DNA of 64,000 bases from positions 62,001 through 126,000 of the forward strand of contig CBFFRP010000281.1 of the NCBI GenBank assembly GCA_965644295.1, read 5' to 3'. The position numbers were made by a program, and so were the translations under genes. Source of the DNA: Paraphysomonas bandaiensis (lineage: Eukaryota > Protista > Chrysophyceae). Positions 43,241-46,785 of the stretch are shown here, one piece after another; positions within the stretch are counted from its first letter, which is position 1, and each line of letters begins with the position of its first letter. The notes below the pieces were generated by a model. It saw only the letters and a program-made list of their open reading frames with translations. It ran no database searches and had not been told where the DNA came from.

Positions 43241-43430
43241 CAGGGATAGGAACAAACAATACATTATTCATTATTGCAATAATATATTGTGGGCAATAAT
43301 GTGTTATATCAATAATATTGCAATGCTTTTATTAAATGTCAGTCAACAATACCATTGCAAGTGCTTTGCGTAGTAGCCATTGGTATTATTTTAAAGTGTT
43401 CTTGGTAGAAATTGTAATTAGTAATACTTA
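43241..43430 (+). mobile_element. Left end of a CAGGGATAGG-family hAT element, truncated by the next element
   Basis: CAGGGATAGGAACAA terminus and ATTGCAAT subterminal motifs as in 40456-40881. Confidence 0.6.
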
Positions 43431-45159
43431 AGGGATGTATTTTTCGGCCTAGTCAATTTGGAGGAATTTCCTAGTCACACCAAAATTGGTGTAATAACCT
43501 AGTCAAAAGGTTGAAAAACCTAGTCATTAAATAACTAGATTTTTAATTTTGTCCTGCCTACTGCCTACTGATTTAAGTATTGGGATATATTATTCAACCT
43601 AGTCAATTTGGTGGACTTTCCTAGTCACTCCAAAATTGGTGTAATAACCTAGTCAAAGCAATAAATGACTCAACCTAGCCAATTATAGTATTAAACCTAG
43701 TCATGAATTGTACTCGCATATAGCTACGAATTACAGAAGCATGAGGTCATAGAAGGTGAATTAAAATCAATACAACATAGATCAGGCGAACACAAAGCTA
43801 AAGAGCAGTAATATAGTAAGATATAACAGCATGAGCAGGACTCCATCGCTCTCTCCAATGCTCAAGTAGGATTTTGTACACCATTCTTTCTCAACACAAT
43901 CTCCATAGATGTCCTTCAGTCGCCTTCAGAAACATTGATGAAACCTTGTACTCTGGGGGGGTCTATCAGCATCACTTAATTTAATAATATAACTATGAAT
44001 TATCATGCACAAGTGTGACAACAACACGCTACAACCTCTCACACACCAAACTACATACTGAAAACGACTGGTTTGGAAACCAAATCGCATCTTGAAAAGA
44101 TTTGCAGTTTGCTGGATGCTTCACAGCTGAAACATTCTGACTGTACAAGATACTTGCTCCATACCATACGAAGTATTAGTGGTTTAGAGGAGAGCATATA
44201 AACAACCATTCTAAGATTAAGTAATCTGATGTATTATAATAGCAATAATATACATATATCTATACATATATCCTTACCTATGGATTCTATGAGTCAGTGC
44301 TCAGAGGACGAAGTGTTGGTTAACGAGGTTGTGGACAGAACTCCGGATACATCTTCGGATCTTCCAAGTTCTTTGGAAAAGCGGCCGTATTTATTATCTT
44401 CAGACGAAGATACTGGGGATAAAATGATGACGACAGTGATTTCGATGAGATGTCAAATATCCCGTTTTTTACGCCGCCAAAGAAAAAAAGGGGTTTTGAG
44501 TGGAGAAAAATACAACAATCTCAGAAAAACACCCTCGAGCAAATTGTGAAGGGTCATTCCTGGTGCAGTCCTCTGAGGAATGGGGTGGTGAAGAAGTGTA
44601 TTATGCACCAAGACTGTGAGCACTTTCGGTACTCCGAGTGGCTTTTGTAAAAGTTGGAAATGTATGTCGGCATGAAACCTTCGCGGATTTTCTCATCGAC
44701 CTCGTCAATGATTTGAGGAGATATTCCCCTCGACTTGGGGACGTTTACATTGACGAGTGTACTATGTACACCTCGCTCGTACACTTCTCCTGTCTTGAGC
44801 ACTTTCACAAAGTGCTCACAGTCTTGGTGCATAACACACTTCTTCACCACCCCATTCCTCAGAGGACTGCACCAGGAATGACCCTTCACAATTTGCTCGA
44901 GGGTGTTTTTCTGAGATTGTTGTATTTTTCTCCACTCAAAACCCCTTTTTTTCTTTGGCGGCGTAAAAAACGGGATATTTGACATCTCATCGAAATCACT
45001 GTCGTCATCATTTTATCCCCAGTATCTTCGTCTGAAGATAATAAATACGGCCGCTTTTCCAAAGCAAGAACTTGGAAGATCCGAAGATGTATCCGGAGTT
45101 CTGTCCACAACCTCGTTAACCAACACTTCGTCCTCTGAGCACTGACTCATAGAATCCAT
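43431..45159 (-). mobile_element. Rearranged DNA transposon, probably Mutator-like (MULE)
   Basis: Terminus AGGGATGTATTTTTCGG followed by ~8 CCTAGTCA subterminal repeats (43448-43703). Decayed coding at 43800-44200. Minus-strand 5' coding from ATG 45159 includes KCVMHQDCEHFVKV...ERGVH...RGISPQIIDEVDEKIREGFMP, resembling the N-terminal zinc-binding region of MULE transposases. Superfamily assignment is inference. Confidence 0.6.
44280..45159. repeat. Long near-perfect inverted duplication (arms ~347/351 bp, spacer ~182 bp)
   Basis: 44280-44626 is the reverse complement of 44809-45159 apart from one 4-bp indel and one substitution that I could see. Mirror-image ORFs on both strands confirm it. 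Confidence 0.97.
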
Positions 45160-45717
45160 GTACTATCATGCACAACGGAATAGTTAGAAGTGTAACTGAT
45201 AATGACGACGTTATGATGACGATCACGTATCTTCGACAGATACTCTCTCTAATTCAGTTCATGGTATATTTCATTGAACATTATAACTCACAGATACAAT
45301 CATGTATTAAGCTGAATCCTAATACATATGCCCGAGGACATTATGTCAAATTCTTATTCTTCTTTACAATATGTTCCGTCATTTATACTATGCTACTATA
45401 GATTAGGTGATATTCATCACCCCACATGACTTGTGGATCTAACATTTGAGTTGGGTATTTAACAGTTTATTTCTTAGAACACTAGACGTATGTTAATGAA
45501 TAATTACAATAATTTTTAGATGCAATAAACCACTTTGCCTGTCATTTACTATCAGAGTCAAGTCACAAGTGTGAAGTGTAGCATCCAACAGATGTTGCCA
45601 CGTACTTGTTTATACTTTCGCATAACTTCAATTCTTTATCACAGATCACAACGCATAGTACAATATGAATTACAACAATGGAAACGTATATTACAACAAT
45701 GGAAACCACCGCTAACA

Positions 45718-46785
45718 TCAACATGCATTACATGTCTTCTGATAATATACTGTCATATCTTCTCCAGGAATCTCTTTGTTTTCAAGATCCCACGCCATTG
45801 GAAATCTCACTCGTACTGACTGATCGAACCGCGCAGAAAATACCTCCGTCCCATTCGCGAAGTTAGAAGGGTTGCAAAACCACTTGTCACAAGGGTTAGA
45901 TAGAGTTTCGCCTGGAGAAGCTGGAGATGCTTCAATAAAACGCCATCCGTGTTGTGCGTCCCAAACCTCAACCCAGTTATGATTGCCATTCTCTACCAAT
46001 CTATTCCATGCAGGGGTACCAGACAACCTAGCCGGAATTCCTACACTTCGTAGTGCATCGATATAGAATATACTCACACCAGTGCAACTGGCATATCCAT
46101 AAGCAAGTATCGACATGGGGTCATAGATAAGAGGTGTCTGGTTACTCATGAATGTAATATTCTTCTCAAATACACCCGACCAGAGCGCAGAGTTTATCAA
46201 CAGCGCAACATCGGATGCTGAATATTCTTCAATATCACCACCAGCAGTGGCAAGGATTGACTGTACTGCTTCAAGCATTAAAGGACGCCAGTTCGACCGT
46301 CCCTCATTGACATTGGCATACGGTATTACATATTCGAGAAACATATCCTTAGGTACCTCTGCTGCCCAGCGATACATCGATCGAACAGAAAGTGAGACAT
46401 TAACACCAACATTCGCTACTCCTTCATTTGGTTGTTGGCCTTGAACTTTAAATCCAAGACTTCCCTTATTAGTGGCATCGAATGAGGGTAGATTGATATC
46501 TGTGATCAGTATGAGTGAGTAATGATATATAACATCAATACATATACACATATATACACATGTATATAACATTTATACATATATAACATCAATACATATG
46601 TATATATTCATTTAATTACCTAAATAATTCATTGATTCAATAAATGCAACTGACATAGCAATACATTCATAGTTATTAGTGTGTGTGGGATAAGGGATAT
46701 ACCCCTCTATACATGGGCTAGTAAACCCCTCAATAGACTGTAACCCTATTAATATATAGCAACATAGTATTATAACAGGGAGCAT
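45718..46785 (-). CDS. Secreted transglutaminase-like superfamily protein, two exons
   Basis: Signal peptide in exon 1 (46785-46620). Exon 2 has FLEYVIPYANVNEGRSNWR, ASCTGVSIFYIDALRSVGIPAR and NHNWVEVW. Confidence 0.85.

Follow-up and report, generated by a model that had tools for sequence, protein, structure and literature searches.

A rearranged Mutator-like transposon copy in Paraphysomonas bandaiensis with the form of a Mu killer-type trigger

In maize, inverted duplications of transposable elements (TEs) silence Mu and Ac (PMC3440606; bioRxiv 10.1101/2020.01.07.897926). Mu killer (Slotkin et al. 2003 and 2005, as summarised in PMC3440606) is an inverted duplication of TIRA and the 5' part of mudrA, with transcription entering from a neighboring gene. 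The 'Ac killer' alleles p1-ww-id1 and p1-ww-id4 (Wang et al.) are composite insertions with inverted 5' Ac ends that were generated via alternative transposition and are driven by an Ac or a host promoter (bioRxiv 10.1101/2020.01.07.897926). Here, a structure of this type is described in a 64,000-nucleotide stretch of the genome of the chrysophyte Paraphysomonas bandaiensis (assembly GCA_965644295.1, contig CBFFRP010000281.1, positions 62,001 to 126,000 of the forward strand), referred to in the following as the window. The structure is a long inverted repeat formed by the 5' part of a transposase gene, belonging to a family filed as Mutator-like elements (MULEs) and situated downstream of a transglutaminase-like host gene. 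The locus is probably a rearranged, non-autonomous copy of such a transposon, namely an accidental by-product of repair that has taken on the form of a Mu killer-type trigger. As such, it is to be regarded as a structural analogue of Mu killer in a new lineage, with no more than a putative role in silencing.

To our knowledge, diatoms possess RNA interference (RNAi) genes but almost no endogenous triggers are known. Genes of the diatom P. tricornutum can be silenced by inverted-repeat constructs (PMC2724275), and small RNAs of 25-30 nt cover methylated TEs in this species (PMC4247016). An active MULE is also found there, which has a recognisable MULE domain, carries a SWIM-type zinc finger and encodes a UBR-type E3 ligase (bioRxiv 10.1101/2023.01.02.522487).

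An inverted repeat within a single transposon insertion

A repeat search of the window revealed an inverted repeat composed of the segment pairs 44280-44373/45066-45159 and 44371-44626/44809-45064. Alignment of the two arms (44280-44626 and 44809-45159) shows a single substitution and a single 4-bp indel between them, the latter corresponding to a CTTG insertion in the right arm. Both arms open with ATGGATTC, encoding MDSMSQCSEDE, while the spacer is the native continuation of the right-arm coding sequence (CDS). In these respects, the initial annotation, which had reported two near-identical inverted arms of some 347 bp at exactly these positions, each starting at the ATG of a transposase-like open reading frame (ORF), together with a spacer of about 182 bp that prolongs the frame of the right arm, was borne out. 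The junction at the centre of the structure, where spacer and left arm meet, displays 3 bp of microhomology (TTT) and falls within the GTG loop of GAGCACTTT-GTG-AAAGTGCTC, a 9-bp palindrome native to the element.

Any RNA spanning the locus would be expected to fold into a 347-bp double-stranded RNA (dsRNA). The fold predicted for 44250-45190 has an energy of -729 kcal/mol when the plus strand is considered and of -740 kcal/mol in the case of the minus strand, as compared to approximately -247 kcal/mol for shuffled sequences (z = -74 and -54, respectively).

Examination of the region to the left of the repeat revealed the 5' end of the element. The stretch 43582-44279 is colinear with, and 98% identical to, a copy on contig C198 (locus L019, 3147-3844), and the same level of identity to uninverted copies extends across the left arm, i.e., over 43582-44626. 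The 5' end, which the initial annotation had deemed not visible, thus comprises a target site duplication (TSD) and a 5' terminal inverted repeat (TIR), which together occupy 43573-43657 and run on without a break into the left arm on the plus strand. Similarly, what had been read from the minus strand past the hairpin as a GT-AG intron-like segment is the antisense of the native 5' leader, as found in every copy, and what had been taken for decayed coding sequence is the antisense of the 5' leader and subterminal region of the element, 98% identical to other copies. The transposon terminus with CCTAGTCA repeats that had been noted in this region, and whose surroundings had been misread, represents the element's own 5' end on the plus strand, with the TIR starting at 43582. 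Since the left arm retains its own 5' TIR and leader, hairpin RNA is no less likely to come from the presumed promoter of the element, acting on the plus strand, than from read-through from the host gene.

To the left of the 5' TIR, and in the same orientation, lies a second terminus (43432-43550) that matches the 3' ends of the C202, C363 and C217 copies at 92-96% identity. In this family, the TIR is 76 bp long, the 5' and 3' versions being approximately 91% identical, and is accompanied by subterminal CCTAGTCA repeats. The outer side of the 3'-type terminus is bordered by AATACTTAA, with the same 9-mer appearing in reverse complement next to the 5' TIR. A specified 9-mer is expected at a specified place about once in 10^5 trials, such that the sequences at 43423-43431 and 43573-43581 can be assigned as the two TSDs of one insertion. 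The reconstructed site without the insertion would read ...GTAATTAGT-AATACTTAA-ATCAGTAGGCAGGACAAGAGCC...; a search for an allelic empty site or alternative haplotig showed the flanks to be single-copy.

The presence of two TIR-like termini only 150 bp apart, in a family that was once abundant, could also be explained by two independent copies having inserted head-to-head, nested or adjacent to each other, in the manner of 'double Ds'-type structures. Against this, the arms have a 2-bp insertion and four substitutions in common that are absent from the three other full-length copies aligned, indicating that the arms are sister copies and each other's closest relatives, rather than the products of two independent insertions. 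Moreover, the two termini are accompanied by the same 9-bp TSD in mutually inverted form, together with flanking sequence, as would be left by a single insertion event. At the same time, no second pair of termini and no second TSD exist at the locus, and the central junction falls within the CDS and not at a TIR. A head-to-head insertion is, as such, extremely improbable.

A mirror-image fragment and the origin of the locus

The history of the locus is illuminated by a fragment elsewhere in the assembly. Positions 7272-8160 of contig C339 mirror window positions 43520-44269, including the leader, the 5' TIR, the TSD, the same 23-mer of host flank and an identical junction to the 3' tail. The fragment, which starts 10 nt from the end point of the right arm, carries the private substitutions of the window copy, differing from it at 3 of 688 sites, and then runs into an additional 5'-type TIR, the TSD and the unbroken native right flank. 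Of the two host flanks, the right one occurs solely on C339 and the left one solely on C281, meaning that the original insertion site is divided between two contigs. When C339:1-20000 was compared with the window by BLAST, no large flanking duplication was detected. A simple inversion of the body of the element was considered and ruled out, given that two copies of CDS 1-345 exist and that C339 preserves the native flank junction.

The break on C339 adjoins an unclassified dispersed repeat (L042, 6300-7271), copies of which are found on at least six contigs, all with the same end base. A 538-aa ORF within this repeat returned no Pfam match.

The favored reading, namely that of an accidental by-product of repair, can be set out as a series of steps. 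A single insertion, bearing the TSD AATACTTAA, would have lost about 3 kb of its interior and acquired its 5' end a second time, in inverted form, comprising the TIR, the leader, the first 345 bp of the CDS, the TSD and 23 bp of adjacent host DNA. In this manner, the 5' end, together with the TSD and the 23-bp right flank, would have been flipped and brought next to the 119 bp that conclude the 3' end. The turn-around would have taken place in the loop of the native palindrome with the aid of the 3-bp microhomology, a configuration that points to template switching or breakage at a hairpin-prone site, whether in the course of replication, gap repair or aberrant transposition. The mirror-image continuation seen on C339 suggests that each arm probably measured about 1.1 kb at first, with TIR, TSD and flank included. 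This larger palindrome would later have been broken beside the ATG, whereupon the window side would have been fused to a fragment of a copia long terminal repeat (LTR), with the other side coming to lie on C339.

Palindromes are a known artefact of long-read sequencing, and the fact that the insertion site is divided over two contigs implies that the assembly near the element is at least fragmented. It could accordingly be argued that the palindrome is false, stemming from a chimeric fold-back read or from a mis-join at a repeat. However, the locus lies deep within a contig of more than 400 kb, and no shared repeat that could mislead an assembler is found at 45159/45160. Furthermore, the arms have diverged, with a substitution and a 4-bp indel distinguishing them, and are separated by an asymmetric spacer of 182 bp of native sequence, in contrast to a perfect fold-back with no spacer. 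The junctions, with their microhomology, TSD and flank, are biologically coherent, the same junction is carried by C339 together with three private substitutions, and like structures with other breakpoints occur at three more loci. Considering above all the divergence of the arms, the coherence of the junctions, the C339 fragment and the position within a large contig, an artefact is very unlikely.

Several points nonetheless weigh against the favored reading. The central junction found no match among metagenome contigs, and exact look-up of junction-spanning ORFs in a collection of 15 billion proteins returned none, such that independent sequence crossing the junction, the absence of which would also be in line with an artefact, was not obtained from either source. 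The order of the rearrangement steps is a reconstruction, and neither the extra unit of TIR, TSD and flank on C339 nor the split over two contigs is accounted for. Finally, all of the close copies examined are deleted or interrupted, so that a silencing role may have no live target.

On the right-hand side of the repeat, fusion to position 166 of a 212-bp copia LTR is what terminates the arm at the ATG. The sequence adjoining the right arm is hence not host sequence but rather a 166-bp LTR fragment, identical over its entire length to more than 40 other LTR copies in the genome. In the reference copia element (L030, C339:39598-45274), the ORFs for gag, integrase and reverse transcriptase are found on the minus strand of that locus. 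It follows that the part retained in the window is the 5' (U3-side) 166 bp, aimed at the hairpin on the minus strand of the window. Clean insertion of a TE that split the right arm was ruled out, since ten bases were lost and not duplicated and since the junction is internal to the LTR. Beyond the LTR fragment and a unique flank, the same-strand transglutaminase-like gene ends as initially described (about 560 bp upstream), the stop of its last exon at 45718 being 558 bp from the right arm.

The copia-type retrotransposon is itself some 5.7 kb long with LTRs of 212 bp, and the 166-bp stretch is often encountered as pairs about 5.5 kb apart. Given the complete identity of this stretch at more than 40 places, the family looks very young and is probably still active.

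Table 1. Features of the window and further head-to-head loci of the family. Window features are given by window position; the last three rows are given by contig position.
Feature	Position	Strand	Description
TSD AATACTTAA	43423..43431	+	Beside the 3' terminus; same 9-mer reverse-complemented at 43573-43581
MULE 3'-type terminus	43432..43550	+	119 bp: 76-bp TIR and subterminal CCTAGTCA repeats
Inverted right-hand host flank	43550..43572	-	23 bp, between the two termini; only other exact genome copy at C339:7969-7991
Second TSD copy, reverse-complemented (TTAAGTATT on + strand)	43573..43581	-	Directly left of the 5' TIR
5' TIR (43582-43657), subterminal repeats and 5' leader/presumed promoter region	43582..44279	+	Contiguous with the left arm
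Left arm	44280..44626	+	Transposase CDS 1-345 in sense; 2-bp frameshift common to the right arm
Spacer/loop	44627..44808	-	182 bp; transposase CDS 346-530 in sense
Right arm	44809..45159	-	Transposase CDS 1-345 plus 4-bp insertion, in sense; ends at the ATG
Copia-type LTR fragment	45160..45325	-	First 166 of 212 bp, in sense; U3 side upstream of the right arm
Unique 3' flank of host gene	45326..45717	-	Sole genome match is itself
Transglutaminase-like host gene, last coding part	45718..46572	-	Pfam Transglut_core, E 2.1e-12
Head-to-head locus	C234:280182-281550		347-bp arms, 98.6% identical; 218-bp loop
Head-to-head locus	C44:46038-47994		Arms of about 570 bp, 92.9% identical; subfamily 76-79% identical to the window family
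Head-to-head locus	C358:29771-30826		47-bp arms

The transposon family and its recurrent hairpins

The combined sequence of arm and spacer recurs as an uninverted stretch of about 530 bp, 92-98% identical, on C198, C157, C363 and C213, with more distant copies also being present. In the uninverted copies, the ATG is preceded by approximately 700 bp that begin with the 76-bp TIR, bearing three CCTAGTCA motifs. Complete derivatives on C217, C363 and C461 are bordered by TSDs of 9-10 bp (n = 3), the window copy by one of 9 bp. Mutator elements are recognized by TSDs of about 9 bp (range 8-11) and by long TIRs, and both are found here. The family is filed as Mutator-like on these two features, which it fits, whereas the transposase core matches no Pfam model.

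The transposase exons were searched singly and not as a joined spliced model. In this manner, no Pfam match to PF10551 (the MULE domain) was obtained for the exon-sized ORFs of the best copies, which are decayed. Across the genome, PF10551 detected other MULE families only, and tblastn searches with those proteins as queries showed no similarity to the family considered here. The protein encoded by the arm yielded nothing in Pfam, while the exon-sized ORFs of the best copies produced solely a sub-threshold match to SWIM (PF04434), a C-terminal zinc finger that many but not all MULEs possess, in the 3' part of the element, with a score of 18.0 bits (below the cut-off of 19.6; E 0.002) and the motif CSCPRFWDNGRYCSH (CxCx(n)CxH). 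Inspection of the middle exons by eye revealed VDSTYK and MDHC...CNIH, the latter with CxxH following the second D. The initial annotation had proposed that intact copies be sought with the arm and tested with MULE and SWIM profiles; homologous copies were indeed found (92-98% identity), yet all of the close ones examined are broken, and of the two domains, MULE was not detected and SWIM fell just under the cut-off.

An exhaustive phmmer search with exon 1 identified 22 relatives among 1.84 billion representatives, all 48-284 aa in length. As none is a full-length transposase, exon 1 corresponds to a lineage-restricted N-terminal domain. Cys/His columns are conserved in 16 relatives. The AlphaFold2 model of exon 1 has a predicted local distance difference test score of 77, and its best structural matches, over residues 73-136 and at low Z, are the zinc-finger domains of WRKY18 (Z 5.2), AFT2 (4.9) and WRKY1 (4.8), a tentative hint of the WRKY-GCM1-type DNA-binding domain that is sought at the N terminus of MULEs. 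Leads from an atlas search point to FAR1, FLYWCH and DBD_Tnp_Mut clusters (scores 0.84-0.89), with no Pfam match.

Some 40 copies bearing a 5' end were scored. Most are plain internal-deletion derivatives consisting of a 5' end and a 3' end, while about one in ten shows some inverted filler; no intact autonomous copy could be demonstrated among the close relatives. In addition, head-to-head partial duplications of this 5' region occur at three other loci of the family, where the breakpoints vary from locus to locus and a TIR is present on one side only (Table 1). The family thus includes at least four independent hairpin loci, two of which, namely, those in the window and on C358, break in the same 3-nt GTG loop of GAGCACTTT-GTG-AAAGTGCTC. 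With most copies being deletion derivatives and hairpins recurring among them, the hairpins look like by-products of the process by which deletion derivatives form.

It could further be imagined that the native palindrome in the 5' coding region predisposes the family to fold-back duplication of its promoter-proximal end and that the RNAi triggers so made, time and again, by the family itself shut it down. This remains an unlikely proposal. If true, it would reveal a path leading from transposition to silencing that is built into the family, the first of its kind outside plants.

Other observations concern further derivatives of the family. A family of miniature inverted-repeat transposable elements of about 385 bp is made of the termini of this MULE (C133, C126), with the sequence at 43432-43550 forming its ends; 408 candidates were seen at first look, and the copies scored are mostly 87-96% identical. 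At C363:676761-677747, a 75-bp segment from the 3' region of the MULE occurs at least seven times at intervals of about 152 bp, forming a small satellite beside another 3'-end copy. The MULE copy on C202 (L028, 4485-4970) harbors about 485 bp of inserted G+C-rich sequence that the C198 copy lacks.

Possible silencing action and comparison with known systems

The host genome encodes Piwi domains at two loci and RNA-dependent RNA polymerase at two loci, as well as tandem RNase III domains in a frame of 1695 aa; silicon-transporter genes are found at approximately seven loci. Given these Dicer-like, Argonaute and RNA-dependent RNA polymerase genes, dsRNA formed by the repeat should be diced into small interfering RNAs (siRNAs). 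Three candidate drivers face the repeat, namely the 5' region of the element (plus strand), the LTR fragment (minus strand) and read-through from the host gene (minus strand). A transcript passing through the repeat would yield long dsRNA and, in turn, siRNAs matching the first 345 nt of the transposase mRNA, for which other copies of the family could be targets. A function of the locus as a silencing trigger is plausible, albeit less likely than not.

A stronger version of this idea holds that the locus is a functional and possibly selected killer, i.e., that the transcribed and diced hairpin silenced the MULE family in trans, as Mu killer does MuDR. The Mu killer-like layout, the RNAi genes in the genome and the candidate promoters aimed into the repeat from both sides are all compatible with such a role. 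Likewise, close relatives without an intact autonomous copy are what is expected of a silenced and decaying family, and three further hairpin loci hit the same 5' region. Still, transposon families as a rule end up dead whether or not a killer locus exists, and the presence of inverted filler in about one-tenth of the 5'-bearing copies fits a mechanical by-product. Moreover, arm identity in the older C44 hairpin has dropped to 93%, offering no sign of maintenance. A functional killer locus is, therefore, doubtful, and an accidental product of repair continues to be the preferred reading.

How, then, does the locus compare with those described? The P. tricornutum MULE is set apart by its description, as the family considered here presents no Pfam match in the core and no active copy was seen. 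Several features are common to the present locus and Mu killer. In both cases, a natural inverted duplication of a partly deleted element of the Mutator superfamily involves the 5' part of the transposase, lies downstream of a neighboring gene whose strand would read into the repeat, and would give rise to a long hairpin RNA. The likeness to Mu killer proposed in the initial annotation thus holds for structure, i.e., an inverted duplication of the transposase 5' part downstream of a same-strand host gene. The anatomy departs from that first description in that one arm keeps the element's own 5' TIR and leader, a copia LTR fragment separates host gene and hairpin, similar by-products are found elsewhere in the family, and all of the close copies examined are already broken. 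Whereas Mu killer has TIRA in both arms and gives a hairpin of about 4 kb, the arms here measure 347 bp and consist of CDS only. A TIR accompanies the left arm alone, the right arm having been cut at the ATG by the copia LTR fragment. Mu killer is, moreover, a maize locus, while the present one belongs to another lineage and concerns a family that already looks dead.

With the Ac killers, the present locus has in common inverted repeats of fractured 5' transposon ends, made by aberrant behavior of the element itself, in which the element's own promoter is kept in the arms, this promoter or a flanking gene could drive dsRNA, and flanking DNA is co-duplicated. In the window, inverted 5' ends are indeed found with the TSD and 23 bp of flank duplicated in both orientations, as in a composite insertion. 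By contrast, the Ac killers belong to the hAT superfamily and have arms of 2-4 kb and inverted duplications of 0.3-3.2 Mb of flanking sequence, ascribed to sister-chromatid transposition and re-replication. Here, no more than 32 bp of flank (the TSD plus 23 bp) were co-duplicated, and the breakpoint lies at an internal palindrome with microhomology, for which template switching offers at least as good an explanation.

Internal-deletion derivatives of maize Mu and Ac/Ds carry filler DNA that stems from interrupted or abortive gap repair and that usually amounts to tens of bases. The present family resembles these derivatives, in that most copies are 5'-end plus 3'-end deletions and the inverted pieces look like templated filler. 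The filler here is, however, of a different scale, amounting to 0.35-1.1 kb and including a terminus and flanking DNA. Together, the four precisely mapped hairpin loci document a natural and repeated origin of the killer-type structure in one genome. Should no siRNAs be produced, the locus would stand as a well-resolved template-switch rearrangement at a palindrome; should the hairpins yield siRNAs, the concept of the killer locus would extend beyond plants.

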